The notes beneath the pieces are model-generated. The model saw nothing but the letters and a program-made list of their open reading frames with translations. It was not told where the DNA came from and searched no databases. Positions 1 through 42,532 of a stretch of 46,102 nucleotides of DNA are shown piece after piece. The DNA comes from Macrostomum lignano (Eukaryota), in contig NIVC01002474.1 in the NCBI GenBank assembly GCA_002269645.1, forward strand, positions 1 through 46,102, given 5' to 3'. The position numbers and the translations under genes were made by a program. Every line of letters starts with the position of its first letter. Position 1 is the first letter of the stretch.

Positions 1-96
1 ACATTAGGGAAAGCGTTTGTTTCATATTATCCATAAACGTAGGAGTGAATACAAAATGGTCTAATAAAAGTACATAGACGGAGGCATTTAACTCAC

Positions 97-19506: not shown

Positions 19507-22500
19507 TTAATTCTTTTTCTTCCTGCCGCCTCTGCCGCCGCGTCCGCCCCTGCTGCTCGCGAGAAGAGCGGCAGCACCAGAAGGCAGCCGGGCGGTGCCC
19601 CGCCTGGAAGTGCTGGACACCAGCACCTGAGGCGGCGGCGTCACGCCCTCGACAGGTTCTATTAGCGACGAGTCCCTGTAGGCACTCTCGTCGTAAAGAA
19701 GCCGAGCGACTGGCCTCTTAGGAACTGTGGCCGGGACCTGAGGCGCAGCTGCGGCCTCCGACTGCCGCTGTTGCGACGCCTGGGGCGCCGACGTCAGCTC
19801 CGTCGGGGATGTTAGTGCAGAACTGGGCACAGAGGATCTGCGAGAGGTGTTAGATAGATAACCTACCTGAGGAAACTGAACCCTACCTGAGGAATCTGAA
19901 CTCTACCTGAGGAATCTGAACTCTACCTGAGGAATCTGAACTCTACCTGAGGAATCTGAACCCTACCTGAGGAATCTGAACTCTACCTGAGGAATCTGAA
20001 CCCTACCTGAGGAATCTGAACTCTACCTGAGGAATCTGAACCCTACCTGAGGAATCTGAACTCTACCTGAGGAATCTAAACTCTACCTGAGGAATCTGAA
20101 CTCTACCTGAGGAATCTGAACTCTACCTGAGAAATCTGAACTCTACCTGAGGAATCTGAACTCTACCTGAGGAATCTGAACTCTACCTGAGGAATCTGAA
20201 CTCTACCTGAGGAATCTGAACTCTACCTGAGGAATCTGAACTCTACCTGAGGAATCTGAACTCTACCTGAGGAATCTGAACTCTACCTGAGGAATCTGAA
20301 CTCTACCTGAGGAATCTGAACTCTACCTGAGGAATCTGAACCCTACCTGAGGAATCTGAACTCTACCTGAGGAATCTGAACCCTACCTGAGGAATCTGAA
20401 CTCTACCTGAGGAATCTGAACCCTACCTGAGGAATCTGAACTCTACCTGAGGAATCTAAACTCTACCTGAGGAATCTGAACTCTACCTGAGGAATCTGAA
20501 CTCTACCTGAGGAATCTGAACTCTACCTGAGGAATCTGAACTCTACCTGAGGAATCTGAACTCTATCTGAGGAATCTGAACCCTACCTGAGGAATCTGAA
20601 CCCCCAAACTGAGAAATCTGAACCCTATCTGAGGAATCTGAACCCTATCTGAGGAATCTGAACCCAACCTGAGAAATCTGAACCCCCAACCGGAGGAAGC
20701 TGAACCCTACCTGAGGAATCTGAACCCCACCTGAGAAATCTGAACCCAACCTGAGAAATCTGAACCCTACCTGAGGAATCTGAATCCCCAAACTGAGGAA
20801 TCTGAACCCAACGTAAAGAATCTAAAAGACACACTAAAAGCAACCCAATAGACCACAAACCCATCATACGCAGTCCTGGCGGCAGTTTGGCTGCGCAAAA
20901 GCCGCGCGGAGCTACCAGCCGTATCCCCAGTTGTCGGCGTGGTCGACATCTGTGGGGTTGACATCTCCGACACCGAGTCCATTTCCCCAGTGCTGTCGTC
21001 CTCCTCAGAGGAGAAAATCATATCTCTTGTTAATCGAGAAGGCTGAAAAAAAGAGTTTCAGATTGTCCGTCATAAATATATTAAAGCTGTTGTCTTTCTA
21101 GACACAAATGTATTTATTAAATACAATTTGTTTACAAGAAACACAAGCATGGTCTTAACAAATATTTAATACTGAAGAAAATACTGATAAATAAATAGCA
21201 CATCCAATGAATACAGAATGAATCCAATGAATACAGATCCACAAGTTCATTTCTAAAAACGTCATTAAATTCTAATTTCCAAGAAACACGGATCCGTTAA
21301 GTTCATTTTCTAAGAATGAAAATCAATTAATTCCATTTCAAAAACAGAGATTAATAACTCATATCTAAGAAACGCTGATCAATAAATCGCATTTCTAAGA
21401 AACGCAGATCAATAAATCGAAATGCAGATCAATAAATCGCATTTCTAAGAAACGCAGATCAATAAATCTCATTTCTAAGAAACGCTGATTAATAAATATA
21501 ATTTTTAAGGAACGCAGATTAATGAATCTCATTTCTAAGAAACGCAGATCAATAATTATCATTTCTAAGAAACGCAGATTAATAATCTAATTTCTAAGAA
21601 ACGCAGATCGATAAATCGCATTTCTAAGAAACGCAGATTAATAAATATAATTTCTAAGAAATGCAGATAAAAAACTTATTTCTAAGAAACGCAGATCAAT
21701 AAATCGCATTTCTAAGAAACGCAGATCGATAAATCTCATTTCTAAGAAACGCAGATGAATAAATCTCTTTTCTAAGAAACGCAGATCAATAAATCTCATT
21801 TCTAAGAAACGCAGATCAATAAATCTCATTTCTAAGAAACGCAGATCAATAAATCTTATTTCTAGGAAACGCAGATCTATAAATCTCATTTCTAAGAAAC
21901 GCAGATCTATAAATCTCATTTCTAAGAAATGCAGATCAATAAATCGCATTTCTAAGAAACGCAAATCTATAAATCTCATTTCTAAGAAACGCAGATAGAA
22001 ACGCAGATCAATAAATCTCATTTCTAAAAAATGCAGATCAATAAATCGCATTTCCAAGAAACGCAGATCTATAAATCTCATTTCTAAGGAACGCAGATTA
22101 ATAAATCTCTTTTCGAAGAAACAAAGAACTAAAACTCCCTAAAGTTCAAATTTTTGAATTTTTAAATTAAAAAAAACCAAAGGGAACTCACCCTAACCCG
22201 CTGCCGTTTAGTACCCGCTTTCACAGTGGCGGATGTCGTCGAGCAAGTCGAAGCTCTTGACGACAAACGCGGCGGCGGCGGCGGCGGCGGCAACTGGAGC
22301 TGCTCGATTTTATCCTGGAGCTTAGCGTTATCCAAATGAAGGCTGGCCACCTTAGCCATCTCGGCCTCCAACTCCCGTTGGGCCTTGGCTCGTTCGGCCA
22401 GCCTGTTATTCTCGGCCGCTTCAAGATTTCGCCGACTTTCAAGCCGGCGCTCTTCTAATTTGCGCCTATACGCGTCCTTCTCATCCTCCAGGTCGCGTTT

Positions 22501-24902
22501 GAGCACTTCTAAACGGCCCTGCAAGTCCGCTACGTTGCGTCTCGCAACCTCAGCTTCTGCCTCGGCAGCGGTTGCACGGTTCTCCGACTATGAAGAGTGA
22601 GTTGGAGTTGTTGAGTCTTAATTATTGCGTCTAAGATTGAGGGGGGGGGTCGCCACACACACCCTCAATTACCTCCAGCGAATGCTGGCAACCCATTTTA
22701 CAGCTGGGTGAACTGAAGCAATGCAGAGTTAAGCTGCTCAAGGACACAAATTGTTCCAAGTGGAATCGAACCCCCAACCTTCAGGTCGTCAGTCCGACGC
22801 TCTAATCACTAGGCTACAAACCCCGGTGCCAGCAGCTTAGGCTCGATTTCAAGTGCAGTCACATTAATTTTTGGGGCTTAAAATCGGAATCTCGGCTTGG
22901 CTCTTCTCGTGCAATTAACGCCCAGCTTGATGGCCAACCCTCAGAGCACAAATCAAGGCTATGAAATGTACATAATAAGACTCACAGCTTGGATGAGCTG
23001 GCTAGTTTCTTTCGAACGTTGAGCTAACTGCTCTTTCAGCTCATTAATCTGATTTTGTTTGGCTTGAATAGTATCTGTATCCGCTGATAGTTGCTCTTGG
23101 AGCTGTAATAAAATAATTTAGTTTTCGTATGTTTTTACTTACAGTAGACAAAATGCGAACTAGTCTACAAATTTAGTTGTGATTTTTTTATTTACCAACG
23201 TTATCCTTTCTTCAGAGTCCGTATTGTTCACGGAGAGGCGCTGCTTTAAATCAATCAGTAACTGATCTTTTTCAATAGATGCAACTGATTCAAGCTCCAG
23301 TTGTTGCTCCAGCTGTTGAGATCAAAGCATGGACTATTATAGAGCTTAGGAGAAACAGTACAAAAAAATGCTTACTGGCTGTTTGTACAGGGATGGGACT
23401 AGCTGTTTGTACAAGGGTGGGACTAGCCGTTTGTACAGGGGTGGGACTAGCTGTTTGTACAGGGATGGGACTAGCTGTTTGTACAGGGATGGGACTAGCT
23501 GTTTGTACAGAGGTGAGACTAGCTGTGTGGTACAGAGGTGGGACTAGCTGTTTGTACAGGGATGGGACTAGCTGTGTGGTACAGAGGTGGGACTAGCTGT
23601 TTGTACAGGGGTGGGACTAGCTGTGTGGTACAGAGGTGGGACTAGCTGTTTGTACAGGGATGGGACTAGCTGTGTGGTACAGAGGTGGGACTAGCTGTTT
23701 GTACAGGGGTGGGACTAGCTGTGTGGTACAGGGGTGGGACTAGCTGTGTGGTACAGGGGTGGGACTAGCTGTGTGATACAGGGGTGGGACTAGCTGTTTG
23801 TACAGGGGTGGGACTAGCCGTTTGTACAGGGGTGGGACTAGCTGTTTGTACAGGGATGGGACTAGCTGTGTGGTACAGGGGTGGGACTAGCTGTTTGTAC
23901 AGGGGTGGGACTAGCTGTTTGTACAGGGGTGGGAATAGCTGTTTGTACAGGGGTGGGACTAGCTGTTTGTACAGAGGTGAGACTAGCTGTGTGGTACAGG
24001 GATGGGACTAGCTGTGTGGTACAGGGGTGGGACTAGCTGTGTGGTACAGGGGTGGGACTAGCTGTGTGGTACAGAGGTGAGACTAGCTGTGTGGTACAGG
24101 GGTGGGACTAGCTGTGTGGTACAGGGGTGGGACTAGCTGTGTGGTACAGGGGTGGGACTAGCTGTTTGTACAGGGATGGGACTAGCTGTGTGGTACAGGG
24201 GTGGAACTAGCTGTGTGGTACAGGGGTGGGACTAGCTGTGTGGTACAGGGCTGGGACTAGCTGTGTGATACAGGGGTGGGACTAGCTGTGTGGTACAGGG
24301 GTGGGACTAGCTGTGTGGTACAGGGGTGGGACTAGCTGTGTGATACAGGGGTGGGACTAGCTGTGTGGTACAGGGGTGGGACTAGCTGTGTGGTACAGGG
24401 GTGGGACTAGCTGTGTGGTACAGGGGTGGGACTAGCTGTGTGGTACAGGGGTGGGACTACAGAGCACTCACCGAATGAATTTTCTCAGCATTTTCGGCTT
24501 CTTTGTTTGCAATTTGCTGCCGCAGTTCATTCAGCTCAGTTTCCTTTGCATCGAGCTTGGCTTGCCCAGCAACTAGCTCATCTCGGAGCTAGAATTGTGG
24601 AAATATATGCGAATAAATTTAATAAGTTTAACAAGTATAAATTAAACATGAGATTTCATTTCTGCTAAGAGCGAACCTGCAAAAATTACAAAAAAACATA
24701 AATTCTATAAACAGAAGATAGCGAGCGGAAAACGAAATCATAAATCATTTTTCCGGAACAAGCATGTACAAGCCTACTAAGACAAGTTAAATGAAAGTCA
24801 GACAGAAAAGAAACTAGGATGGACAAGCCAAAACAAAAATACAGTCATTTAAAAAAAATGTACTAAAACAGAAAAGGCCGATACAGACAGACAGACAGAC
24901 AC

Positions 24903-24951
<49 letters not shown>

Positions 24952-27900
24952 AAGAAGACGAAGACGCTCGAGTTAGTTAATACGAGCTATTATCAGACTT
25001 TTTTGGGATAAGTTACCATATGTTCCCAGATGTGACACACTGTTTCCCATATGTGACACCATGTTCCCATATCGGACACCCTGTTCCCATCTGACACCAT
25101 GTTCCCATATCGGACACCCTGTTCCCATATGTGACACCCTGTTCCCATATCGGACACTCTGTTTCCCATCTGACACCCTGTTTCCCATCTGACACCCTGT
25201 TTCCCATCTAACACCGTTTCCCATCTGACACCCTGTTACCCATCTGACACCCTGTTTCCCATCTGACACCCCGTTTCCCATCTAACACCGTTTCCCATCT
25301 GACACCCTGTTTCCCATCTGACACCCTGTTTTTCATCTGACACCCTGTTTCCCATCTGACACCCTGTTTCCCATCTGACACCCTGTTTTTCATCAGACAC
25401 CCTGTTTCCCATCTGACACTTTGTTTAACATCTGACACCCTGTCTCCCATCTGACACCCTGTTTAACATCTGACACCCTGTCTCCCATCTGACACCCTGT
25501 TCCCATATCTGACACCCTGTTCCGATATCTGACACACTGTTTCGCATCTGACACCCTGTTTCCCATCTGACACCCTGTTTCCCATCTGACACCCTGTTTC
25601 CCATCTGACACCCTGTTTCCATATCTGACACCCTGTTTAACATCTGACACCCTGTTTCCCATCTGACACCCTGTTCCCATATCTGACACCCTGTTTCCCA
25701 TCTGACACCCTGTCTCCCATCTGACACCCTGTTTCCCATCTGACACCCTGTCTGCATATCTGACACCCTGTCTCCCATCTGACACCCCGTCTAAAGCTCA
25801 TTTTCTTAAGCTCACCTGCTTAAGCTGATTCTCAGCTTCAGACTCAGCTTCATCCAGCCGACGCCGAAGCTCCAGCAGCTGCTCATCCTTTGCTGAGGAC
25901 TCCGCCGAAATGGACTCCAACTTCGCTTCAGACTGGCGGAGCTTCTCAACCTTCAATGAAAAACAATAGGTTGATAAAAAATAAGAGACGAGTCCCAACT
26001 CCCACACGCTTGCTTACCGTCTCATTCAGTTCGATAGAGAGCTTATCACTGTCACGTGACTTTTCTGCCAATTGCGACTGGAGTTGGGCTAGCTGCTGAT
26101 TTAGCTGAAATGAATGTTCAAAATGGCTCAATTATTTTACTGAGGCTAATAATATATTTGTAATACTTTAATAGCACTAATTTGCTAACCACTTCTATTC
26201 GCTTATCAAGTTTTCGTATTTGGTAATTTTTCAGGTTTCTTGAAAATCCTCCTTTTTGGCAATTTTTCGGGTGTGTTGAAAATCCTTATATTTCGGCAAA
26301 TTTTGGGGTCTGTTGAAAATCCACCTATTTCGGCAATTTTTCGGGTTTGTTAAAATCCTCAGATTTGCAGCAATTTTTCGGGTTTGTTAAAATTCTCAGA
26401 TTTGCAGCAATTTTTCGGGTTTGTTAAAATTCTCAGATTTGCAGCAATTTTTCGGGTTTGTTAAAATCCTCAGATTTGCAGCAATTTTTTGGGTTTGTTG
26501 AAAATCCTCAGAGTTCAGCAATTTTTCGGGTTTCTTGAAAATCCTCAGATTTCAGCAATTTTTCGGGTTTCCCGAAAATCCTCAGATTTCAGCAATTTTT
26601 CGGGTTTGTTGAAAATCCTCAGATTTCAGCAATTTTTCGGGTTTCCCGAAAATCCTCAGATTTCAGCAATTTTTCGGGTTTCTTGAAAATCCTCAGAGTT
26701 CAGCAATTTTTCGGGTTTCCCGAAAATCCTCAGAGTTCAGCAATTTTTCGGGTTTCTTGAAAATCCTCAGAGTTCAGCAATTTTTCGGGTTTCCCGAAAA
26801 TCCTCAGATTTCAGCAATTTTTCGGGTTTCTTGAAAATCCTCAGAGTTCAGCAATTTTTCGGGTTTCCCGAAAATCCTCAGAGTTCAGCAATTTTTCGGG
26901 TTTCTTGAAAATCCTCAGATTTCAGCAATTTTTCGGGTTTCCCGAATCCTCAGAGTTCAGCAATTTTTCGGGTTTCCCGAAAATCCTCAGAGTTCAGCAA
27001 TTTTTCGGGTTTCTTGAAAATCCTCAGAGTTCAGCAATTTTTCGGGTTTCCCGAAAATCCTCAGATTTCAGCAATTTTTCGGGTCTGTTGAAAATCCTCA
27101 TTTCGGCAATTGTTCCTGTTTGTTGAAGTTTTTGATATTCGGTAATTTTTCAGGTTTGTTTAGGATACTAACATTTCGGAAACTTTTCTGAATCGTTGAA
27201 AATCCTCATTGGTAATTTTCAGGTTTTTTTAATTTTTTAATATTTCATATGTCTCACCCTGTTTCCCATCTGACACCATGATCCCACATCTGACACCCTG
27301 TTCCCATATCTGACACCTGATCCCACATCTGACACCCTGTTTCTCATCTGACACCCTGTTTCCCATCTGACACCCTGTTTTCATATCTGACACCAGATCC
27401 TATATCTGACACCCTGTACCCATATCTGACACCTGATCCAATATCAGACACCTGATCCCACATCTGACACCATGATCCCATATCTGACACCCTGTTCCCA
27501 TATCTGACACCTGATCCCACATCTGACACCCTGTTCCCATATCTGACACCTGATCCCACATCTGACACCCTGTTTCCCATCTGACACCATGATCCCACAT
27601 CTGACACCCTGTTTCCCATCTGACACCATGATCCCACATCTGACACCCTGTTTCCCATCTGACACCATGATCCCACATCTGACACCCTGTTTCCCATCTG
27701 ACACCATGATCCCACATCTGACACCCTGTTTCCCATCTGACACCATGATCCCACATCTGACACCCTGTTTCCCATCTGACACCATGATCCCACATCTGAC
27801 ACCCTGTTTCCCATCTGACCCCATGATCCCACATCTGACACCCTGTTTCCCATCTGACACCATGATCCCACATCTGACACCCTGTTTCCCATCTGACACC

Positions 27901-30900
27901 ATGATCCCACATCTGACACCCTGTTTCCCATCTGACACCATGATCCCACATCTGACACCCTGTTTCCCATCTGACACCATGATCCCACATCTGACACCCT
28001 GTTTCCCATCTGACACCATGATCCCACATCTGACACCCTGTTTCCCATCTGACACCATGATCCCACATCTGACACCCTGTTCCCATATCTGACACCTGAT
28101 CCAATATCAGACACCTGATCCCACATCTGACACCCTGTTTCTCATCTGACACCCTGTTTCCCATCTGACACCCTGTTCTTTTATCTGACACCCTGTTCCT
28201 TTATCTGACACCCTGTTTTCCATCTGACACCCTGTCTCCCATCTGACACCCTGTTTCCCATCTGACACCTGATCCCATATCTGACAGCCTGTTTCTCATC
28301 TGACACCCTGTTTCCCATCTGACACCCTGTTCCTTTATCTGACACCCTGTTCCTTTATCTGACACCCTGTTTTCCATCTGACACCCTGTCTCCCATCTGA
28401 CACCCTGTTTCCCATCTGACACCTGATCCCATATCTGACAGCCTGTTCCCACATCTGACACCTGATCCCATATCTGACACCATGATTCCAAATCTGACAC
28501 CTGATACCATATCTGACACCTGATCCTATATCTGACACCAGTTCCCATATCTGACACCCTGTTCCCATATCTGACACCTGATCCCACATCTGACACCCTG
28601 TTTAACATCTGACACCCTGTCTCCCATCTGACACCCTGTTTCCCATCTGACACCCTGTTTAACATCTGACACCCTGTTTAACATCTGACACCCTGTCTCC
28701 TATCTGACACCTGATCTTATATCTGACACCCTGTTCCTTTATCTGACACTCTGTTTTCCATCTGACACCCTGCCTAAAGCTCATTATCTTAAACTCACCT
28801 GCTTAAGCTGATCCTCAGCTTCCGACTCAGCTTCATCCAGCCGACGCTGAAGCTCCAGCAGCTGCTGATCCTTTGCTGAGGACTCCGCCGAAATGGACTC
28901 CAACTTCGCTTCAGACTGGCGGAGCTTCTCAACCTTCAATGAAAAACAATAAGTTGATAAAAAATAAGAGAAGAGCCCCAACTCCCACACGCTTGCTTAC
29001 CGTCTCATTCAGTTCGATAGAGAGCTTATCACTGTCACGTGACTTTTCTGCCAATTGCGACTGGAGTTGGGCTAGCTGCTGATTTAGCTGAAATGAATGT
29101 TCAAAATTGCATCTGCATTTGACACCCTGTTCCCACATCTGACACCTGATCCTATATCTGACACCTGATCCCATATCTGACAGCCTGTTCCCACATCTGA
29201 CACCTGATCCCATATCTGACACCATGATCCCAAATCTGACACCTGATACCATATCTGACACTTGATCCTATATCTGACACCTGATCCAATACCTGACACC
29301 ATGATCCTATATCTGACACCTGATCCCATATCTGACACCCTGTTCCGATATCTGACACACTGTTTCGCATCTGACACCCTGTTTCCCATCTGACACCCTG
29401 TTTAACATCTGACACCCTGTTTAACATCTGACACCCTGTTTAACATCTGACACCCTGTTTAACATCTGACACCCTGTTTAACATCTGACACCCTGTTTAA
29501 CATCTGACACCCTGTTTAACATCTGACACCCTGTTCCCATATCTGACACCTGATCTTATATCTGACACCCTGTTTCCCATTTGACACCCTGTTCCCATAT
29601 CTGACACCCTGTCTCCCATCTGACACCCTGTTTCCCATCTGACACCCTGTTTCCCATCTGACACCCTGTTTCCCATCTGACACCCTGTTCCCATATCTGA
29701 CACCAGATCCTATATCTGACACCTTTTTTATCTGACACCCTGTCTCCCATCTGACACCCTGTCTGCATATCTGACACCCTGTCTCCCATCTGACACCCTG
29801 TCTAAAGCTCATTTTCTTAAGCTCACCTGCTTAAGCTGATTCTCAGCTTCAGACTCAGCTTCATCCAGCCGACGCTGAAGCTCCAGCAGCTGCTGATCCT
29901 TTGCTGAGGACTCCGCCGAAATGGACTCCAACTTCGCTTCAGACTGGCGGAGCTTCTCAACCTTCAATGAAAAACAATAAGTTGATAAAAAATAAGAGAC
30001 GAGTCCCAACTCCCACACGCTTGCTTACCGTCTCATTCAGTTCGATAGAGAGCTTATCACTGTCACGTGACTTTTCTGCCAATTGCGACTGGAGTTGGGC
30101 TAGCTGCTGATTTAGCTGAAATGAATGTTCAAAATTGCATCTGACACCCTGTTTCCCATCTGACACCCTGTTCCCATATTTGACACCAGATCCTATATCT
30201 GACACCTTTTTTTATCTGACACCCTGTCTCCCATCTGACACACTGTCTGAATATCTGACACCCTGTTTTCCATCTGACACCCTGTTTTCCATCTGACACC
30301 CTGCCTAAAGCTAATTTTCTTCAACTCACCTGCTTAAGCTGATTCTCAGCTTCCGACTCAGCTTCATCCAGCCGTCGCTGAAGCTCCAGCAGCTGCTCAT
30401 CCTTTGCTGAGGACTCCGCCGAAATGGACTCCAACTTCGCTTCAGACTGGCGGAGCTTCTCAACCTTCAATGAAAAACAATAAGTTGATAAAAAATAAGA
30501 GACGAGCCCCAACTCCCACACGCTTGCTTACCGTCTCATTCAGTTCGATAGAGAGCTTATCACTGTCACGTGACTTTTCTGCAAATTGCGACTGGAGTTG
30601 GGCTAGCTGCTGATTTAGCTGAAATGAATGTTCAAAATTGCATCTGCATCTGACACCCTGTTCCCACATCTGACACCTGATCCTATATCTGACACCTGAT
30701 CCCATATCTGACAGCCTGTTCCCACATCTGACACCTGATCCCATATCTGACACCATGATCCCAAATCTGACACCTGATACCATATCTGACACCTGATCCT
30801 ATATCTGACACCTAATCCAATACCTGACACCATGATCCCATATCTGACACCTGATCCCATATCTGACACCCTGTTCCGATATCTGACACACTGTTTCGCA

Positions 30901-33900
30901 TCTGACACCCTGTTTCGCATCTGACACCCTGTTTAACATCTGACACCCTGTTTAACATCTGACACCCTGTTTAACATCTGACACCCTGTCTCCCTTCTGA
31001 CACCCTGTTTAACATCTGACACCCTGTTTAACATCTGACACCCTGTTTAACATCTGACACCCTGTCTCCCATCTGACACCCTGTTTAACATCTGACACCC
31101 TGTCTCCCATCTGACACCCTGTTCCCATATCTGACACCTGATCTTATATCTGACACCCTGTTTCCCATTTGACACCCTGTTCCCATATCTGACACCCTGT
31201 CTCCCATCTGACACCCTGTCTAAAGCTCATTTTCTTAAACTCACCTGCTTAAGCTGATTCTCAGCTTCCGACTCAGCTTCATCCAGCCGACGCTGAAGCT
31301 CCAGCAGCTGCTCATCCTTTGCTGAGGACTCCGCCGAAATGGACTCCAACTTCGCTTCAGACTGGCGGAGCTTCTCAACCTTCAATGAAAAACAATAAGT
31401 TGATAAAAAATAAGAGACGAGTCCCAACTCCCACACGCTTGCTTACCGTCTCATTCAGTTCGATAGAGAGCTTATCACTGTCACGTGACTTTTCTGCCAA
31501 TTGCGACTGGAGTTGGGCTAGCTGCTGATTTAGCTGAAATGAATGTTCAAAATTGCATCTGACACCGTACCCTGTTTCCACATCTGACACCTGATCCTAT
31601 ATCTGACACCTGATCCCACATCTGACACCTGATCCTATATCTGACACCTGATCCCACATCTGACACCTGATCCTATATCTGACACCTGATCCCATATCTG
31701 ACACCTGTTCCCATATCTGACACCTGTTCCCATATCTGACACCCTGTTTCCCATCTGACACCCTGTTTCCCATCTGACACCCTGTTCCCATATCTGACAC
31801 CAGATCCTATATCTGACACCTTTTTTATCTGACACCCTGTCTCCCATCTGACACCCCGTCTAAAGCTCATTTTCTTAAGCTCACCTGCTTAAGCTGATTC
31901 TCAGCTTCATCCAGCCGACGCCGAAGCTCCAGCAGCTGCTCATCCTTTGCTGAGGACTCCGCCGAAATGGACTCCAACTTCGCTTCAGACTGGCGGAGCT
32001 TCTCAACCTTCAATGAAAAACAATAGGTTGATAAAAAATAAGAGACGAGTCCCAACTCCCACACGCTTGCTTACCGTCTCATTCAGTTCGATAGAGAGCT
32101 TATCACTGTCACGTGACTTTTCTGCCAATTGCGACTGGAGTTGGGCTAGCTGCTGATTTAGCTGAAATGAATGTTCAAAATTGCATCTGACACCGTACCC
32201 TGTTCCCACATCTGACACCTGATCCTATATCTGACACCTGATCCCACATCTGACACCTGATCCTATATCTGACACCTGATCCCACATCTGACACCTGATC
32301 CTATATCTGACACCTGATCCCATATCTGACACCTGTTCCCATATCTGACACCTGTTCCCATATCTGACACCCTGTTTCCCATCTGACACCCTGTTTCCCA
32401 TCTGACACCCTGTTCCCATATCTGACACCAGATCCTATATCTGACACCTTTTTTATCTGACACCCTGTCTCCCATCTGACACCCCGTCTAAAGCTCATTT
32501 TCTTAAGCTCACCTGCTTAAGCTGATTCTCAGCTTCAGACTCAGCTTCATCCAGCCGACGCCGAAGCTCCAGCAGCTGCTCATCCTTTGCTGAGGACTCC
32601 GCCGAAATGGACTCCAACTTCGCTTCAGACTGGCGGAGCTTCTCAACCTTCAATGAAAAACAATAGGTTGATAAAAAATAAGAGACGAGTCCCAACTCCC
32701 ACACGCTTGCTTACCGTCTCATTCAGTTCGATAGAGAGCTTATCACTGTCACGTGACTTTTCTGCCAATTGCGACTGGAGTTGGGCTAGCTGCTGATTTA
32801 GCTGAAATGAATGTTCAAAATGGCTCAATTATTTTACTGAGGCTAATAATATATTTGTAATACTTCAATAGCACTAATTTGCTAACCACTTCTATTCGCT
32901 TATCAAGTTTTCGTATTTCGGCAATTTTTCGGTTCTGTTGAAAATCCTCAGATTTCAGCAATTTTCAGGTTTGCTAAAAATATCAACTAATGGGTGTTGC
33001 CTAGAGTTTCTGTATATAAATCATTTTATTGATCAGTAATTGAAAAAATGAGCTCACTAAATCTGATGATTTGCTAGAGGCATCAACTCCGCTCTGAGAA
33101 GATTCCAGCTGGTCTTTCAGCTCCAGCAGCTGTTGATTGAGCTGAAGCAGGCGTTCAGAGACGAAAAAGCATTTTACTTGAGCCTAATGTTAGTAATGAA
33201 AGTTAAGCATCTCTTTGTAAAAACTAATTCAAATTCACAATATGCAACTCACAAGTTGAACTTTTTGCTCAGCTTCGGATTCCAACAGCGCCAACTTCTC
33301 TTGCAGACTGTCAATCTGCTTGTCTTTGGCCATGGAAGCTGACAGTTCCAATTCCAATTGCTCTTCAAGCTGGATAGTTGATTTCATGATTGTTGCTTTA
33401 TTAAAACTTATAAAGAACATGTCTACATTCACCGCACTTAGGAACCTGGGAGGCTGGTGACCCAGCAACTGGGGATCTGGGAGGCTGGTGGCCCAGCAAC
33501 TGGGGATCTGGGAGGCTGGTGGCCCAGCAACTGAGGATCTGGGAGGCTGGTGGCCCAGCAACTGGGGATCTGGGAGGCTGGTGGCCCAGCAACTGGGGAT
33601 CTGGGAGGCTGGTGGCCCAGCAACTGGGGATCTGGGAGGCTGGCCCAGCAACTGAGGATCTGGGAGGCTGGTGGCCCAGCAACTGGGGATCTGGGAGGCT
33701 GGTGGCCCAGCAACTGGGGATCTGGGAGGCTGGTGGCCCAGCAACTGGGGATCTGGGAGGCTGGCCCAGCAACTGAGGATCTGGGAGGCTGTTGGCCCAG
33801 CAACTGAGGATCTGGGAGGCTGGTGGCCCAGCAACTGGGGATCTGGGAGGCTGGTGGCCCAGCAACTGGGGATCTGGGAGGCTGTTGGCCCAGCAATTGA

Positions 33901-36900
33901 GGATCTGGGAGGCTGGTGGCCCTGCAACTGGGGATCTGGGAGGCTGGCCCAGCAACTGAGGATCTGGGAGGCTGGTGGCCCAGCAACTGGGGATCTGGGA
34001 GGCTGGTGGCCCAGCAACTGGGGATCTGGGAGGCTGTTGGCCCAGCAATTGAGGATCTGGGAGGCTGGTGGCCCTGCAACTGAGGATCTGGGAGGCTGGT
34101 GGCCCAGCAACTGGGGATCTGGGAGGCTGGTGGCCCAGCAACTGGGGATCTGGGAGGCTGTTGGCCCAGCAATTGAGGATCTGGGAGGCTGTTGGCCCAG
34201 CAATTGAGGATCTGGGAGGCTGGCCCAGCAACTGAGGATCTGGGAGGCTGGCCCAGCAACTGAGGATCTGGGAGGCTGGCCCAGCAACTGAGGATCTGGG
34301 AGGCTGTTGGCCCAGCAACTGAGGATCTGGGAGGCTGGTGGTCCAGCAACTGAGGATCTGGGAGGCTGGTGGCCCAGCAACTGAGGATCTGGGAGGCTGG
34401 CCCAGCAACTGAGGATCTGGGAGGCTGGTGGTCCAGCAACTGGGGATCTGGGAGGCTGGCAGCAGCCAAAGCCCTATAATACTGCCATAAGTAGTATATC
34501 GTTAGTATAAGTATCATACCTGCTGCAACTGGGCCTCAGCCTGCGAGCTAATTCGTAGAACTTGCTCATTCATCTCTTCTAGTTTGGCGTCCTTAGCCTT
34601 GGAATCGGCCATTTCTTCGCGGAGTTTCTGGACGAGCTGGCAAATGATTAAAGAATAGAAATTTGAAACGGAGATTCTTCAAAGAAGAAAGCGTATTCTT
34701 CTTTAACAAACTATTGCTTATTGGACTAGATCACCCTTTCTACATCTCTTCCACGAGTCTTAATTATGTATTAAGCATTTAGCTACGGTATCTACCCAAT
34801 TCTATCTCCCAGCCACTGAGCACTTCTCATGAACATCGTCAATGCATAAGAATATTAATACGAAAACCAAATATCTAAGCAACACGGTAGTGATCACTCA
34901 CGCATTCAACTCTTTCCTCTAGATCAACATCAGCCTTAGCAGCCTCTTTCAAATGCTCGTTAGCCATTTGGCAGCAGCTTTGATCGGATTCAATGTTCTT
35001 AGCAGTATAAGCTTCATTGTCTATGGCATCGGCAGATTTAGCAGCGGGCTCTGATCCTTGTTCGGCATGCCCGAGGGCTTCGATGCGACTCCTTAACTGG
35101 CTGATGGTTTCCGCCTGGGTGCAAGTGGTGCATTTTCAGAGAGAGTCATTCATATGCTTTGACTGTTCCTCGTGTCTACCTTCTCCTCCTCTCCCATCTC
35201 CGCTCTCCCTCTACCATCTCCTATCTCCCTTCTCCCATCTCATATCTCCCTTCTCCTATCTCCCTTCTCCCCTCTCCTATCTCCCTTCTCTCCTCTCCTA
35301 TCTTCCTTCTCCCATCTCATATCTCCCTTCGCCCCAAACCGCTCTCGCATTTCCCTTCTATATCCCCCGTATCGACTCTCTCCTCTCCTATCTCCCTATC
35401 TGGTCTCTGCATCTGTGTATCTACCATCTAATCTCACACTCAATCTCCAATTCAACTCTATTCTCAAGCCAGTTCCCCTCACCTGCTCCTCAACAGTCAG
35501 CCGTGCAGTCTTCAACTCCTCAGCCAGCAATTCTCGCTCCATCCTGAGTCCATCCAGCATCTCCTGTGAGCAGGCCAGCGTGGCAGTCATGGCGCCTACC
35601 TGTCGCTCTCGGTTCTCCTGCTCTTCAACCAGTTCAGCCTCCAGCTCGTGAACCAGAAACGAGTCGTTCTTAAGCAGAGTGGCCCGCATTGCAGACCGGT
35701 GCTGATTGGTGGGCGGAGGCGGGTGCGACCTGGCCAGGCTGCTGATATCTGCAGACTCCGCTAGCCGCCTGTGCATATCGCCGATTCTCCTGACTCGAAT
35801 GTTTACTTCGGCTTCGATGGCCTCTTTAGTGGAGACGCTCTGAGCAGCGGCCAGCTCCATCTCCAATTTCTCAACTTTATTATTCAAATTTTCCAACTGC
35901 TCATCTTGCTGCTCAGCCTCCGACCTGGCCTCGCCAAGTTGCTCTTCTAATCTATCGATTTTTGCTTGCAGTTCGGCCAGCTTGCGTTTGTGAGCCTCAA
36001 CCATGCGCTTCTTCAGGTTGTCGCTGATCCGCTGGGAAGTGTCCAGGTACTCGCGCAGGCGGGTGTCGTGGCGCTCCTGCAAGGGTCAATGGGGAATGGT
36101 TTAGTAGTTATAAATCAATGTCAGAGGCAAATTTTAAGAATTCAATCGCTAGACTCTAGGAAAAGGAATAGAAATGGCAGATTTTAACCACGAAATGGCA
36201 GATTTAACTACAAAATGGCAGATTTAACTACAAAATGGCAGATTTAACTACAAAATGGCAGATTTTGAATCTACAAAATGGCAGATTTAACTACAAAATG
36301 GCAGATTTTGAATCTACAAAATGGCAGATTTTGAATCTACAAAATGGCAGATTTTGAATCTACAAAATGGCAGATTTAACTACAAAATGGCAGATTTAAC
36401 TACAAAATGGCAGATTTTAGCTACAAAAATGGCAGATTCTGAATCTACAAAATGGCAGATTCTGAATCTACAAAATGGCAGATACTGAAACTACAAAACG
36501 GCAGATTCTGAAACTACAAAATGGCAGATTCTGAAACTACAAAATGGCAGATTCTGAAACTACAAAATGGCAGATTCTGAAACTACAAAATGGCAGATTC
36601 TGAAACTACAAAATGGCAGATTCTGAAACTACAAAATGGCAGATTCTGAAACTACAAAATGGCAGATTCTGAAACTACAAAATGGCAGATTCTGAAACTA
36701 CAAAATGGCAGATTCTGAATCTACAAAATGGCAGATACTGAAACTACAAAATGACAGATTCTGAAACTACAAAATGGCAGATTCTGAAACTACAAAATGG
36801 CAGATTTTGAAACTACAAAATAATTGAAGAATCTTGGAATAGCATTGCTCAGTTATATCACAACGTACCTCTTGCAGCTCCTTCTGCTCCTGAAGCTGCT

Positions 36901-39900
36901 GCTCAAATCGCTCCTCCACCTCGCTCATCAGCCGGTCCCGTTCGGCAATGAGCTCGCGTCTAATGCGCATCTCCCGCTCCTCCATCTCCTCCTCTTGCTG
37001 CTGCACAGTTTGGCGCAGGTCTCCAATGAGCTTCAGCATCTCCTGCAGTAGTTTTAGGATTGGATTATCGTTTAATTTAGATATTGAAGTCACTAGATCT
37101 ATTTATTGAAGCCTCTACATTAATCCAGCTATCTAGACGAGAAATCGATAGTTCATCTAGCCGGTTTTTTGAAAACAGATAGAAATGCTTCAGGTCTCAC
37201 TCTTAGATCTCAGAAATCACCCTTCGATACCCTTCAGGCCTCACCGTTAGATATCTTTCAGGCCTCACCCTTGGATATCCTTCAGGTCTCACTCTTAGAT
37301 ATCCTTCAGCCCTACTCTTAAATTCATCCGCACTACACTATTGAAAAGAGCATCATTTAAAGGAGTGCAAACCCACACCTCAAGCACTGCAACTCGCTCA
37401 TTCCTTACCTCCTTACTACACTGGGCAATGTCGGCCATTTCGAATTCATTCGCATCAACGTAGGTCACTTCGTACTGCTGCTCATCCTCGCCATCGGAGT
37501 CTTCTTGATGGTCGCCGATCTCGTCTACTATTGGCTCAATTGGCTCAATTGGCTTAATCTCCTCCTGTTCATCTTTCTTAGCAACCGTCGTCATAGCAGC
37601 CGCAGTAACAACTGTAGCTGTCATAGTTTTAGTCTGATAGACTGGCACAATAATAGTAGAATTATTATGACTGCTACTCTTAGCAGTAGCTGTAGTAACC
37701 GTAGTAGAAGTCTTATTACTATTAGTAGTAGTAGTAGCCGTAACCTTCCTAATTCCAATGCCGGGAGAGGCGGCATTCGGAGCGGCCAAGTGAAGCCGGT
37801 GCGGGGTCGGCGCCGTCACGGTGATGTTGCTGGCTAGCGCGCTGAATCTCAATACGTTTAAAGTGTCATCAAACAGACTGGCGCACCTGCTGATATTCAC
37901 AATCATAGTGGCCCTGCCGCTGCCGCTGAAGTACGGCTGTATCAACTGGGTGAGTTTGGACTCGCGGAACGGCACCAGCCTGGCTGATTTCGGATTCTGC
38001 TGATTGTGCTGAAGTGTTTCAATGCACCTGCGCAGAGTCAGCAGGCTGCTGTTGATGCTGCAGGCCTCGCGAGCGCGGTCGTTTGCGCCGATGTTGGCGC
38101 CGTATCGGGCTGTGCGCTGGCTCTCTGAACCGGCCAGGTCGCAGAATGTTAAACTGGACACCTGTTGTTTCCAATGCGTGTTTATGCTGGGCTGTATAAT
38201 AAACTCTCCGGAATATCTTCATCGGAATTCCCCAGATAAATACAAATTCAGAATCCTACTTACTGACTGAATTCCCCAGACTCTCTATGTGAATTCCCCA
38301 GACTCTCTATGTGAATTCCCCAGACTCTCTATGTGAATTCCCCAGACTCTCTATGTGAATTCCCCAGACTCTCTATGTGAATTCCCCAGACTCTCTATGT
38401 GAATTCCCCAGACTCTCTATCTGAATTCCCCAGACTCTCTAACTGAATTCCCCAGACTCTCTAACTGAATTCCCCAGACTCTCTATCTGAATTCCCCAGA
38501 CTCTCTAACTGAATTCCCCAGACTCTCTAACTGAATTCCCCAGACTCTATCTGAATTCCCCAGACTCTCTATCTGAATTCCCCAGACTCTCTATCTGAAT
38601 TCCCCAGATTCTCTATCTGAATTCCTCAGACTCTCCATATGAATTACCCATGCTCCCTATCTGAATTCCCCAGACTCCCTATCTGAATTCCCAAGACTCT
38701 TTATCTGAATTCCCAAGACCCTCTATCTGAATTCCGCAGACTATCTGAATTCCCTAGACTATCTGAATTCCCTAGTAGACTATCTGAATTGCACAACATC
38801 TCTATCTGAATTCCCCAGACTATCTGAAATCCCCAGACTCTCTACCTGAATTCCCTCGAAAAATGAATCTGAATTCTCTAGAATCCATCTAAATTCCCCC
38901 AAAATCCATCTGAATTCCCTAGACTCTCTATCTGAATTCCCCAGAGCCCCTTACCAATCCAAAATTAGGCGCCTCCTTATCCAAGCAGGTGACCAGGCGA
39001 ACAGCGAACAGCGAGTGACTCCTGGAGGACTGCTGATTCAGAACGGTAGCGGCCACGCTCTGGTTCTGTTTGCCCAGCAACACGAGCCTGCAGGCGTCCT
39101 GAGCGCTGCACACAGGCAGGCAGCGCAGGCCTTTGATATAAAATTTGCCTGTCTTGTCCCAACGAACATCCAGAGCAGTCCGGCTCGGCTTCCGGCCGCG
39201 TTGAACAATCGGCTCCAGCAGGTCGTACACGACTTCGTTGTAGATCTCGGCGTACGAAACCCAGACGCAGAAGCGCTTCTGCGATGACGGAACTGACGAA
39301 GCATCGCCAATCACTTCGCTGTCTGATTCGCAGGTTGTCGAAGAATCGACAGCAGCGTCCGATGACAGGCGGGAATCGAAAATCACTGAATCGCGGGAAT
39401 TGTTGCACCTGCAGTGGTTTTGCGATGGGGATGCGAGAAAGGATTTATATAAGTTGGCTAGGAATTCGATTTAAGATTATTCAGATGGGAGATTTTCCCT
39501 GAAAATGGGATATTCTTCAGGAGATGGGAGATTTTAATTAAGAATGGGATTTTTTCAAATGAGAGATTTTTCCCTAAAAACGGGATTTTTTCAGAAGATG
39601 GGAAATTTTCCCGTAAAATGGGAGATTCTTCAGAATATGGGACATTTTTCCTTTAAAATGGGATATTTTTCAGAAGATGGGAGATTTTTTCCCTGAAAAT
39701 GGGATATTATTTTGAAGATGAGATTTTTCCCTGAAAATGGGATTATTTTCAGAAGACAGGAGATTTTTCCCTAAAAACGGGCGTTTTTTAAAGATGTAAT
39801 TTTCCCTAAAATGGGATGTTCTTAAAATGGGAGATTTTCCCTGAAAATGGGATATTCCTAAAATGGGAGATTTTTTCCAAAAAATGGGACATTCTTTAAA

Positions 39901-41828
39901 TGGGAGATTTTATTCGAAAATGGGATTTTCATCAGGATATTGGAGACTTTTCCCGAAAAATGGGAAACTCGTTACAATATAGGAGATTTTCTGGTAAAAA
40001 TAGGATATGATGGGAGATTTTTCCCTAAAAATGGGATCCTCTTCAGAAGATAGCAGATTTTTCTCTGAAATTGGGAGATTCTTCAGAGGAGCTTCTTTCC
40101 CTATTGAAAGGGAAATTCAATAGTTGTAATTAATAAACTGCTGCAAGTATACCAACTACAAATAGAAACAACCTACCAGGCGGTTGCCACAGCCTCTCCA
40201 GCCTCATAGGACTGCAGTAGGGCTTTGGTTTTCTTAAACGCAGCTTCAGCATCTCCTCTGGACAGCTGGACAGCTTGGCTAAAACTGTCCGGACGGAATA
40301 AACAGCCAGGCTGAGCAGGCGTTGACAACAGGCGGTCGCCAATGTTGTCGAACAGAGATTTCAGGGCGCGCGGCAGAATGCCGGGTTGGTCGCCGCTGCC
40401 CTGCAAAAATGATACGATTAATTTTCTGATTACGCGCTCTGATGTGCCCCGATGAAAATGGTACCTGTGCCAAAAAGCATCCCAGAGTCACTTGCGTCGC
40501 CTTGTTGTAGGTAGGTAATACAGGTAAAATGTAAAAATAAGTGACCCAAGACTCTGAAACGACCCGGGGCGATTCTACAAATATATCGACTCTGGAGCAA
40601 AATATTAGTATCTGAGGAAGTATCTCCCCTCTCTCCTATCTACCTCTCTCTTATCTACCTCTCTTCTATCTACCTCTCTCCTATCTACCTCTGTCCTATC
40701 TACCTCTCTCTTATCTACCTCTCTTCTATCTACCTCTCTCCTATCTATCTCTGTCCTATCTACCTCTACTTATCTACGTCTACTTATCTACGTCTACTTA
40801 TCTACGTCTACTTATCTATTTCTCTCCTATCTACCTCTCTTAAGGGGGCCGTAGCCCAGCGGTAGCGCAGCTGCTCTGGTGTGCCAGCGGCCCAGGCTCG
40901 ATTCCAAGTGCAGTCGCATTAATTTGGGGCTGAATTGGAATCTCGACTTGGCTCTGCTCGTGCAATTAACGGCCTTGAGAGCCAACCCCCCAAGGCGCAG
41001 TGAAGTGTACATGCCTAACGATAAAATAAAGTTAGGGCCGCTGTACACTCCTGTGTGAGTGTGTGCCTGTGCGTATGACTGCTCAGGGGAGTCAGGCGCC
41101 AGGATAACCACAGCCCCTGGCCTCTACATTATAGTATTTATAGCTTCAAAATCCAGCGATGTGAATAGGAGGATTGAAAGCCAGTCCAACTCACTTGAAT
41201 AGTATGAGTCTTGCCAGCGCTTGTGACACCATAGCTGAAGACAAGGCCGCTGTGACCTTGCAGCAGCTGCTTGACAAGGTCAGCCACTGTACCGTCAAAC
41301 ATCTGCGACTGACTGACTGACTCGTTGAACACTCGGCTGAAGGCGAACCGATGCGACAGGCGCTCGCTATCCCGCAGATGCCCAGCAGGTGGAGCGTCAG
41401 CCGATGCGTTAGCAACAATTGATTTTGGCCCGTCAATTGTGAAGCAGTGCTTCTCTTCGCCAGCAGCGAGCTCGGCTTCAGTGAGAGGTCGGACTCGCAG
41501 GTAGATTTTCATTCGATCCGACACCGCATGCGCTGTTGATGCCGATGCAACGCTGCCAGTCTGCTCTGAGCGGCTGACGTCCAGGCTGCTGAATCGCAGC
41601 TTCTGACGAATGGACTGCAGTGGCAGTTCAGCTTCCAGCTTGTCAACATCTGGCTGAGGCTGGGGCGCATTGGGGCGCTTGTTCTGCAGCTCCGCTAGGG
41701 TGTCTGGTTAAGTATAAAAAAGAACAGCAGTATCGATTAAATATGATTCTAAATATACAACCTTTGAACTTACACAAGCCAAGAGACTTGTCGGAGGGCT
41801 CTGCAGGTAGACACAGGTTTTTCAACAT
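19507..41828 (-). CDS. KIF20: Kinesin-6 family motor (KIF20A/MKLP2-like) with a repeat-expanded coiled-coil stalk; about 2,028 aa, 31 coding exons
   Basis: Exons: 41828-41774 (tentative first), 41703-41195, 40400-40177, 39408-38955, 38161-37409, 37042-36869, 36076-35483, 35114-34902, 34636-34520, 33369-33253, 33141-33058, seven A/B pairs (32801-32715/32647-32513, 32161-32075/32007-31885, 31533-31447/31379-31245, 30618-30532/30464-30330, 30115-30029/29961-29827, 29087-29001/28933-28799, 26104-26018/25950-25816), 24588-24472, 23312-23196, 23102-22986, 22587-22192, 21042-20870, 19837-19507 (TAA). All GT-AG and in frame; total 6087 nt. Confidence 0.92.
19860..20812. repeat. Intronic 20-bp minisatellite (CTACCTGAGGAATCTGAACT), about 47 copies
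   Basis: Direct inspection. Confidence 0.97.
21355..22115. repeat. Intronic 30-bp minisatellite (TTTCTAAGAAACGCAGATCAATAAATCTCA)
   Basis: Direct inspection. Confidence 0.95.
22645..22824 (-). mobile_element. tRNA-derived SINE, family A (second copy)
   Basis: Same A/B boxes and body as 9085-9377. Confidence 0.75.
22825..22975 (+). mobile_element. SINE family B fragment, head-to-head with the family A copy
   Basis: GGCTCGATTTCAAGTGCAGTCACATTAATTT...GGAATCTCGGCTTGGCTC matches family B. Confidence 0.65.
23370..24460. repeat. Intronic 24-bp minisatellite (GGGACTAGCTGTGTGGTACAGGGGT-type), about 45 copies
   Basis: Direct inspection. Confidence 0.96.
24882..24950. repeat. (GACA)n microsatellite
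   Basis: Direct inspection. Confidence 0.95.
25025..32490. repeat. 19-21 bp satellite (ATCTGACACCCTGTTTCCC and variants) filling most introns of the exon-pair array
   Basis: Blocks at 25025-25790, 27255-28770 and between copies 6, 5, 4, 3, 2 and 1; alternating 19/20-bp dimer at 27550-28080. Confidence 0.96.
25816..32801 (-). repeat. Seven near-identical tandem copies of a two-exon unit encoding a 74-aa coiled-coil repeat
   Basis: Exon A (87 nt) LNQQLAQLQSQLAEKSRDSDKLSIELNET, a 67-nt intron, and exon B (135 nt) VEKLRQSEAKLESISAESSAKDEQLLELRRRLDEAESEAENQLKQ. Every copy keeps TTTCAG/GTAAGC and TGAAG/GTGAG sites. Copy 2 has an in-frame 12-nt deletion. Confidence 0.93.
26205..27200. repeat. 37-bp minisatellite (GAAAATCCTCAGATTTCAGCAATTTTTCGGGTTTCTT)
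   Basis: Direct inspection; one to two related monomers at 32915-32975. Confidence 0.94.
33445..34460. repeat. 28/31-bp minisatellite (CAACTGAGGATCTGGGAGGCTGG(TGG)CCCAG)
   Basis: Reverse complement of the 12985-13436 family. Confidence 0.96.
35180..35420. repeat. CT-rich low-complexity intronic repeat (CTCCTATCTCCC-type)
   Basis: Direct inspection. Confidence 0.8.
36172..36820. repeat. 20/23-bp minisatellite (CTACAAAATGGCAGATTCTGAAA)
   Basis: Direct inspection. Confidence 0.96.
37800..41520 (-). CDS. KIF20: Kinesin motor domain (kinesin-6 type), spread over 4 exons
   Basis: KIYLRVRP; P-loop YGVTSAGKT; GILPRAL followed by a long loop-6 insert before VWVSYAEIYNE (kinesin-6 hallmark); switch I NQQSSRSHSLF; switch II DLAGSE; VPFRESKLT...MIVNIS...DTLNVLRFSALA. 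Confidence 0.95.
38258..38945. repeat. 22-bp minisatellite (TGAATTCCCCAGACTCTCTATC)
   Basis: Direct inspection; it begins a few bases inside the 5' splice site at 38954. Confidence 0.94.
39480..40090. repeat. Degenerate repeat (AAAATGGGAGATTTTTCCCT-type)
   Basis: Direct inspection. Confidence 0.82.
40622..40840. repeat. 14-16 bp pyrimidine-rich repeat (TCTACCTCTCTCCTA)
   Basis: Direct inspection. Confidence 0.85.
40844..41105 (+). mobile_element. tRNA-derived SINE, family B (most complete copy)
   Basis: GGGGCCGTAGCCCAGCGG (A box), GGCTCGATTCC (B-box-like); body GCAGTCGCATTAATTTGGGGCT...GTGAAGTGTACATGCCTAACGATAAA shared with 8222-8445 and 22825-22975. Confidence 0.72.
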
Positions 41829-42532
41829 ATTATAGTATATGCCCCCTATTGGAATAAATGTTGAAAACTTGTGGACACACGCTTTAGAAAAAGAGTCAAA
41901 TTATTTTACCGCACTTTATGATTATTAGAAATCATTTTCTGTCGAAATCAAAATTTGCCAACTTTTGAAATCGTAATTAAAATTTTCCAAAATCAAAATT
42001 CAGAAAAACAAAGTTTACTATGACCAAAACTCACTTTTTACTATTGATTTACTGCTCATGCAAAACAAAATACATGGATATATAGCGCAAATTAGTTTAT
42101 TTTTAGCCACTTTTTATACGCTTCCAAAATTTTCACTTCTAAATTGTTTTGAAATCGAAATTCTACATTTTGGAAAATCAAAATCAAAATTTTTGAACAT
42201 GTCTAAGCATTATACAAGAAATACGAGTGTATAAGCCCCTTCCACAAAGGTATTAGACCCTCTTCATGTATATTTATTTTCTAGAGCAGCAGCCAGTAGG
42301 AAAAGGGCAGCTTTAATAAAGGGCAATTTAGAAAAAATTTGAAAGTGCGCCAGACACTGTCCGCGGTTTTACAACTTTTTCCTATAGGGTATATGCCTCT
42401 TTAACTGATAGGCATCTCACCTTGAAGGTTTTATTTCATATACAATTATTATTCATCACTATACCTAAAAAATCAAAAAATAATTATAGCATGGCTTAAT
42501 TTATTGGCTTTATAAATCTTTTCTACCATCTA

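Follow-up and report, generated by a model that had tools for sequence, protein, structure and literature searches.

In the human LPA gene, the size of the protein depends on the allele through the copy number of the KIV-2 repeat (PMC6314250, PMC11515395, PMC4378929), and in kind this two-exon repeat is the known system nearest to the locus described here. Among motor proteins, the kinesin-6 family has an insertion in loop 6 as its hallmark, and its stalks and tails are divergent (PMC5909929). Here we describe a kinesin-6 gene of the flatworm Macrostomum lignano in which seven near-identical exon pairs follow each other in the predicted coiled-coil stalk. The gene lies on the minus strand of contig NIVC01002474.1 (assembly GCA_002269645.1), of which the whole analysed stretch, positions 1-46,102 (46,102 nucleotides, nt), is called the window. 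The gene model was hand-built from open frames and splice sites and checked against homologues. With moderate confidence, we interpret the array as a multi-exon coding tandem repeat, i.e., a whole-exon variable number tandem repeat (VNTR), in the coiled-coil stalk of a KIF20-type kinesin-6, which was amplified repeatedly, most likely through minisatellites, and whose copies are probably spliced in and evolve near-neutrally.

The array consists of seven direct units of about 385 nt within 25.7-32.9 kb, and the spacers between them are very unequal in length (Table 1). Each unit holds one exon A and one exon B. In the gene model, all 14 array exons were in phase 0-0, none contained a stop codon, and GT/AG was intact at 28 of 28 splice sites. 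Together these exons encode 514 amino acids (aa), or 25.5% of the corrected 2018-aa model. The units thus stand head to tail with complete exons and their own splice sites and keep the frame, which is the anatomy of a multi-exon coding VNTR. The first-pass annotation of this DNA had described seven near-identical copies adding about 514 aa, a quarter of the protein (32801-25816), with all splice sites intact, a uniform exon phase, no stops and a single in-frame indel of 12 nt, and the gene model confirmed this description. B2 has lost one copy of a GAAGCTGAG direct repeat that occurs twice at a spacing of 12 nt, so that the 12-nt deletion is a product of slippage between direct repeats and in frame by construction. 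The in-frame indel was therefore rejected as a sign of selection.

From its motor, the gene was assigned to the KIF20/MKLP2 type of kinesin-6, in agreement with the first-pass annotation. The P-loop GVTSAGKT, the switch I motif SSRSH and the switch II motif DLAGSE are present on the minus strand, and the Pfam profile Kinesin (PF00225) matched over its full length with E=7.9e-83. The motor is N-terminal, and a loop-6 insertion of about 110 residues lies between GILPRAL and FCVWVSYAEIYNE. The best match among solved structures was KIF20A (6.5e-86), which aligned over the whole motor (query 1-456) including this insertion. The second-best structure, 5x3e (named only 'Kinesin-like protein'), reached 4.7e-53, and other families reached 1e-41 or weaker. 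Database matches were mostly named KIF20A at about 40% identity, with one KIF20B and several unnamed or hypothetical proteins. A candidate first exon, E1a at 41828-41774, was rejected because the annotated proteins begin with MDQVKN, and the model was corrected from 2031 to 2018 aa. Intron 1 is longer than 4.4 kb and contains a mariner element. The donor of E29 is weak, and the distal coiled coil and tail are therefore a less certain part of the model.

In the full model, about 1300 aa lie between the motor and the tail, and the stalk includes five 39-aa (117-nt) exons of phase 0-0 (E8, E9, E25, E26, and E27). These five exons and exon B are mutually related beyond composition (z = 4-9 compared with shuffles), and E10 resembles exon A. 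This relatedness indicates that exon duplication in the stalk has a long history and that the recent array is its newest episode. Database searches detected no similarity of the stalk and tail outside Macrostomum. Between motor and neck, E4 encodes a Thr/Ala/Ser-rich low-complexity linker of about 90 aa (TATTTTNSNKTSTTVTTATAKSSS...), which has in-frame indels between two gene copies (see below) and a ratio of nonsynonymous to synonymous changes per site (pN/pS) of 0.29.

Relatives of the gene were found by a full HMMER scan with exon E6, which gave M. lignano proteins at 88-97% identity, among them PAA55420.1 (P0121), its mate in a 90% cluster, PAA49536.1 (P0124), and the UniRef entry P0122. 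A word-indexed protein search with the A-B-A-B dimer and with the motor missed M. lignano proteins identical to the query in stretches, which is a false negative; with the motor, it listed a 50% paralogue (P0001) and not the 97-100% identical M. lignano proteins. The dimer query gave no match at all, although P0122 holds exact B copies; P0124, with its exact A-B pair, could not be listed, since in the 90% cluster it stands behind P0121. Nulls from this search with repetitive or coiled-coil queries are thus no proof of absence. Two contigs of the Mlig_3_7 assembly, NIVC01003851.1 (L003) and NIVC01002757.1 (L002), were compared with the window. L003 is colinear with the window and 97-99% identical, and contained five A-B units compared with seven. 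All five units are intact and carry a different mosaic of the window's variants. L003 lacks exactly the two youngest blocks of the window, and it also lacks 213 nt holding E9 (junction at about 23536 of L003), at the end of a 31-nt minisatellite. L002 is the second gene copy, with exons 94-98% identical to those of the window. It contains E1b-E10 and one exon A, followed within the fetched stretch by at least 13 copies of B alone, which match each other at every one of their 135 nt. In L002, the duplication junction falls at +6 within the A-B intron, with 37-nt-type repeats in front of it, and a four-unit higher-order repeat of 3.76 kb was observed.

In P0125, a gene model from an older assembly, the L002-type copy runs B-E25-E28-tail and then into the same neighbouring gene, and P0122 and P0126, predicted from a third assembly, contain consecutive B exons. 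Across the assembled M. lignano copies, which are assemblies and not genotyped individuals, the array comprised seven pairs in the window, five in L003, and one A followed by at least 13 B in L002, and the copy-number variation suggested earlier for this DNA is thus present between assembled genome copies. The amplification is real, recurrent and variable in copy number. It is very unlikely that the number of true units is lower and that the seven copies, or the two youngest, result from misassembly of a minisatellite-rich region. The amplified arrays were found in three independently assembled contigs that differ in junctions, spacer lengths and variant mosaics, the spacers are also unequal in internal structure, and the consecutive B exons come from a third assembly. 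However, blocks 1 and 2, spacers included, are only one substitution and the 12-nt deletion apart and are exactly those absent from L003, and simple repeats and polyploidy are known to make the genome of M. lignano difficult to assemble (PMC5730564). The paralogue locus L001 has no coiled-coil exons downstream and was uninformative on the array. As a separate observation, P0121 and P0124 as annotated lack E9 even though the exon is present in contig L002, and E9 may be a cassette exon or a presence/absence polymorphism.

Over a core of 347 nt, the units differ from each other at 0-11 positions (0-3.2% divergence), and their translations differ at 0-4 of 74 aa. Units 1, 2, and 7 are identical over the core apart from the B2 deletion, which also counts among the points for misassembly. 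Identity of such a degree cannot arise by chance. The units show a higher-order structure, in which units 6 and 5 resemble units 4 and 3, while unit 7 has the native upstream flank in common with unit 1. M. lignano, a hidden polyploid, has recently gone through a whole-genome duplication that M. cliftonense and M. hystrix do not share (PMC10468722). The synonymous divergence between the two duplicated gene copies (window vs. L002) was about 0.09-0.11. Since the unit divergence of at most 3.2% is below the synonymous divergence of about 10% between the gene copies, the amplifications postdate the genome duplication, and the proposal of a recent amplification in the first-pass annotation holds. 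The unit alignment contains only 16 variable sites, essential splice nucleotides occupy 8 of the 347 positions per unit, and 5.4% of random exon substitutions create a stop. Intact sites and frames are therefore expected without selection, and the chance that all are intact under neutrality was roughly 50%. At the age of this array, intact splice sites and open frames are no evidence of splicing competence or of selection.

In a single-chain AlphaFold2 model, a continuous helix extended over residues 58-239 with a predicted local distance difference test score of 92-97, across both A/B and B/A junctions. The Viterbi heptad assignment placed each unit in a single register, interrupted by one stutter-like skip at residue 71 of 74. 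A coiled coil rises by about 0.15 nm per residue. As a fair estimate, each 74-aa unit would add about 11 nm if the coiled coil forms; the same figure had been given before, and it holds on that condition, with the predicted helix and the single heptad register in its favour.

Between the window and L002, pN/pS was 0.04 for the motor and 0.09 for the stalk exons E5-E10, in which there were 31 synonymous and 10 nonsynonymous changes. The neck and proximal stalk (E5-E7) are under purifying selection between the two gene copies (pN/pS 0.09), and the immediate neighbours of the array, E8 and E10, showed 7 synonymous and 0 nonsynonymous changes. In the same comparison, exons A and B had 5 nonsynonymous changes and 1 synonymous change. 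When variation within the array was included, the counts were 9 nonsynonymous to 3 synonymous, which fits neutrality (p=0.74), the numbers being small (12 changes) and the array sites not fully independent. This 9:3 ratio differed from the 10:31 of the flanking stalk exons (Fisher p=0.004). The variability of exons compared with non-coding sequence inside the array was uninformative (7/222 vs. 9/125 variable sites, p=0.11). These substitution counts indicate that the amplified module is much less constrained than its neighbours and that the added sequence would be tolerated and near-neutral.

The neutral pattern of A and B argues against tight functional tuning. It is quite unlikely that the length of the stalk is functionally tuned, with selection driving or maintaining the expansion and the number of copies, or their regulated skipping, determining how far the motor reaches at the central spindle. 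Such tuning would fit the independent expansion of the same stalk segment in both duplicated gene copies, the frame-preserving units with their predicted helix and kept heptad register, and the long stalk that evolved in vertebrate KIF20B too (PMC5909929). However, a shared hotspot explains the recurrence equally well, as the 19-nt minisatellite is present in both copies. The repeated exons carry neutral substitutions next to constrained neighbours, the copy number varies between near-identical haplotypes or assemblies and E9 is deleted in one of them, which looks like drift, and neither the intact splice sites nor the in-frame indel counts as evidence. The reading as a selected molecular ruler is unsupported, and the neutral substitutions speak against it. 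Full expression of the array together with selection on stalk length is also unlikely; both copies independently lengthened the same segment after the genome duplication (seven 74-aa vs. at least 13 45-aa units), which would be convergent with KIF20B. If the array were fully expressed and selected, segregating copy-number alleles would form a natural allelic series for stalk length in a cytokinesis motor. The length variation is real but probably neutral.

The order E10-A-B-E25 in the protein PAA49536.1 proves the use of at least one A and one B as exons in mRNA-derived annotation. Exon sequence, donors and the full internal intron are identical in every copy, and the spacer introns (214-2694 nt) are inside the range of the other introns of the gene. 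These features favour the inclusion of most copies, and most copies are probably spliced in. Several points weigh against our interpretation. Apart from the small substitution counts in A and B, the difference between five and seven units may be due in part to collapse in the older PacBio assembly rather than to a true allelic difference, and PAA49536.1 contains exactly one A-B pair. Moreover, of the native intron upstream of exon A, no more than about 21 nt remain in copies 2-6 (5 of the 7 A acceptors), which makes their branch sites uncertain.

The array may be real in the genome with its extra copies skipped, which is possible but doubtful; the mRNA would then contain a single A-B pair or a variable subset, and the stalk would be about 440 aa shorter. 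PAA49536.1 is the sole annotation-level protein for the locus and has one pair, the five A acceptors have lost the native intron beyond -21, and neutral evolution of A and B is expected if most copies never reach the protein. The frame is preserved whatever is skipped, since all exons are in phase 0-0, and E9, likewise of phase 0-0, is absent from annotated proteins even where the contig has the exon. Apart from the uniformity of the copies and the ordinary size of the spacer introns, skipping is countered by the B-only units of L002, which keep 62 of the 67 intron nt. The public annotation rests on short-read transcripts mapped to L003, a contig with frameshifts. The single pair is therefore weak evidence, since short-read assembly would collapse 222-nt repeats of more than 98% identity regardless of the true inclusion. 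Compared with the window at 22587-22192, E28 of L003 (33079-33469) has a 1-nt and a 2-nt deletion, and consequently the tail of PAA49536.1 (1255 aa) is frameshifted (SRTVQPLPRQKLRLRDAT), and about 300 residues of the C-terminus, for which the window has an open frame, are lost. The L002-derived P0121 breaks off inside the first B, as expected of an assembler meeting the repeat. In this region, every public protein model of the gene (1255, 1108, 905, and 805 aa) is either truncated or collapsed. A literature search on the gene identifiers found nothing.

As shown in Table 1, every spacer of the array is filled by a 19-nt minisatellite, and this repeat is present in both gene copies. A 37-nt minisatellite lies upstream of the last unit, and one or two related 37-nt units were also found upstream of the first unit (about 32880-32981). 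Three types of junction were distinguished. In the first, the 19-mer is joined to position -21 of exon A; in the second, it is joined to the 37-mer and native flank; and in the third, a 37-mer-like repeat is joined to position +6 of the A-B intron. These junctions and the minisatellite-edged deletion of E9 show that whole exons were gained and lost repeatedly and independently at the borders of minisatellites. The stalk would first have been built by serial duplication of phase 0-0 exons of about 39 aa, and one A+B pair (74 aa) would have been amplified later. As read from the anatomy of the array, the 19-nt and 37-nt minisatellites of the flanking introns would have served as the sites of unequal recombination or of replication slippage, the likely route. 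The amplification would have recurred independently after the whole-genome duplication, giving seven pairs in the window, five in L003, and a single A with 13 or more B-only units in L002.

Minisatellites are also common elsewhere in this DNA. Simple and tandem repeats make up 15% of the M. lignano genome (PMC5730564). Most larger introns of the kinesin gene (window 19.8-40.9 kb) hold their own distinct minisatellite, with units of about 14-40 nt, and the paralogue locus L001 (11.4-21.1 kb) also has a different minisatellite in almost every intron. A 28/31-nt family is shared, in inverted orientation, by the neighbouring gene region (12981-13436) and the E8-E9 intron (33446-34459) at 85-90% identity, which suggests that minisatellite families disperse, perhaps carried by mobile elements. 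The open reading frames of the 19-nt minisatellite were rejected as coding, since its unit is stop-free and hence open in all three phases.

Under the interpretation of a near-neutral whole-exon VNTR, each included unit would add a helical segment of about 11 nm, and stalk length would differ between the gene copies. Provided that the units are included in mRNA, natural alleles and duplicated copies of a cytokinesis kinesin would have stalks that differ by hundreds of residues, and M. lignano, a transgenic and regenerating model flatworm, would offer a ready-made allelic series for kinesin-6 stalk length. The locus also clearly illustrates the gain and loss of whole exons through intronic minisatellites (A+B amplified, B alone amplified, and E9 deleted), and a warning for annotation, as the public models of the gene are truncated or collapsed at the array. 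No new kind of mechanism is involved, since tandem exon amplification and coding VNTRs are well known. The first-pass annotation had considered a variable stalk unusual for a conserved mitotic motor. This was overstated, given the divergent stalks and tails of kinesin-6 and the KIF20B stalk of about 1000 aa (PMC5909929), and a 2018-aa kinesin-6 is notable but not unprecedented.

Table 1. Positions of the kinesin exons, the repeated units and other features in the window.
Feature	Position	Strand	Remarks
First coding exon ATGGATCAAGTTAAAA (MDQVK + 1 nt)	about 950 nt past the right end of the window		10001-10016 in L003
N-terminus and kinesin-6 motor	37409..41703	-	E1b 41703-41195, E2 40400-40177, E3 39408-38955, E4 38161-37409
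Low-complexity linker in E4	37409-37850
Neck and proximal stalk	34902..37042	-	E5 37042-36869, E6 36076-35483, E7 35114-34902
Older, diverged stalk module exons, phase 0-0	33058..34636	-	E8 34636-34520 (39 aa), E9 33369-33253 (39 aa), E10 33141-33058 (28 aa)
Array of seven exon pairs	25816..32801	-	aa 1086-1599 of the corrected model; A 87 nt, intron 67 nt, B 135 nt
Unit copies, about 385 nt each	25758-26142, 28741-29125, 29769-30153, 30272-30656, 31187-31571, 31815-32199, 32455-32839
Pair 1	A1 32801-32715; B1 32647-32513	-
Pair 2	A2 32161-32075; B2 32007-31885	-	B2 with 12-nt deletion
Pair 3	A3 31533-31447; B3 31379-31245	-
Pair 4	A4 30618-30532; B4 30464-30330	-
Pair 5	A5 30115-30029; B5 29961-29827	-
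Pair 6	A6 29087-29001; B6 28933-28799	-
Pair 7	A7 26104-26018; B7 25950-25816	-
Exon A, 87 nt		-	encodes LNQQLAQLQSQLAEKSRDSDKLSIELNET; acceptor TTCATTTCAG; donor GTAAGC
Exon B, 135 nt		-	encodes VEKLRQ...ENQLKQ; acceptor CATTGAAG; donor GTGAGC or GTGAGT
Predicted B-to-A exon junction			AAGCAG then CTAAATCAG; longer form ...CAGCTTAAGCAG then CTAAATCAGCAGCTAGCC
Predicted B-to-B exon junction			AAGCAG then GTTGAGAAG; longer form ...CTTAAGCAG then GTTGAGAAGCTCCGC
Predicted B-to-E25 exon junction			...CTTAAGCAG then CTCCGAGATGAGC
Two youngest blocks, 640 and 628 nt	31534..32801	-	both missing from L003
Older module exons downstream of the array, 117 nt (39 aa) each, phase 0-0	22986..24588	-	E25 24588-24472, E26 23312-23196, E27 23102-22986
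Distal coiled coil and tail	19507..22587	-	E28 22587-22192, E29 21042-20861, E30 19837-19507 (stop codon)
19-nt intronic minisatellite, largest block	27255..28772		CATCTGACACCCTGTTTCC and variants
19-nt repeat in spacers	25033-25787, 29116-29802, 30138-30303, 30647-31221, 31571-31855, 32199-32483
37-nt minisatellite upstream of the last unit	26218..27226
Intron minisatellite examples	40628-40840, 39483-40087, 38267-38945, 36172-36821, 33446-34459, 23374-24459, 21262-22122, 19863-20807
Minisatellite array just downstream of the kinesin gene	17352-19455
Mariner-type DNA transposon in kinesin intron 1	42531-43842		terminal inverted repeats 42531-42561 and 43812-43842; transposase reading frame 43622-42600 (minus strand), in-frame stop near 42870
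Dispersed repeat, about 200-300 nt	8226-8435, 9194-9377, 22643-22950, 40884-41093		both orientations, 80-85% identity
Neighbouring gene(s) downstream of the kinesin gene	11175-12848 and 1-9000	-

The remaining features of the window concern mobile elements and the neighbouring genes. The mariner-type transposon in intron 1 has terminal inverted repeats of 31 nt that are 94% complementary, and its transposase reading frame, which matched the Pfam domains Transposase_1 and HTH, is interrupted by one in-frame stop. A dispersed repeat, whose translation contains a GFDS/GSIP motif resembling a transfer RNA (tRNA) T-arm, may be similar to a short interspersed element; ARAGORN found no tRNA in its copies. 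In the neighbouring region downstream, TIL and ShK domains were found with Pfam, together with part of a VWD domain as a weak, sub-threshold match (E=3.4e-4, 21.4 bits vs. a cut-off of 22.9). The Lys/Arg/Cys-rich repeated modules of this region (open reading frames of 200-330 aa) had no Pfam match. The older prediction P0125 fuses the kinesin tail with this neighbouring gene.

Compared with known systems, the array resembles human LPA KIV-2 in that each repeat contains two whole exons with their splice sites, preserves the frame, and occurs in near-identical copies whose number varies, in M. lignano between assembled genome copies (PMC6314250, PMC11515395, PMC4378929). The LPA unit, however, is about 5.5 kb long and encodes a folded kringle domain, and its full inclusion and the resulting protein size polymorphism have been demonstrated. 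The units of M. lignano, by contrast, measure 0.5-3 kb, encode a predicted coiled coil, lie in intronic minisatellites, and are probably, for the most part, included in mRNA. By sequence, the closest family is KIF20A/MKLP2 (Subito in Drosophila). The alignment covers the whole motor with its loop-6 insertion, and identity to vertebrate KIF20A is about 40%, whereas the listed KIF20A proteins are about 650-780 aa long compared with about 2018 aa in our model. The intron positions of the gene are common to the M. lignano paralogue, which is without the long stalk (P0001). KIF20B (MPP1) shares the N-terminal kinesin-6 motor, the loop-6 insertion and a long coiled-coil stalk, of about 1000 aa (PMC5909929) compared with about 1300 aa from motor to tail here. 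However, KIF20B is described as a vertebrate innovation, the flatworm motor matches KIF20A best, and its long stalk would have arisen separately through amplified exons in a flatworm lineage. Finally, mutually exclusive or cassette tandem exons such as SNAP25 exon 5 and insect Mhc are also adjacent duplicates of the same phase, whose alternative use keeps the frame (PMC9741552, PMC2581893, PMC2257972). Those duplicates are ancient, diverged and functional alternatives, whereas the array copies are 97-100% identical (0-4 of 74 aa apart, with the B copies of L002 identical), and a swap between them changes nothing. In the array, only the number of included copies could matter, not the choice of copy.

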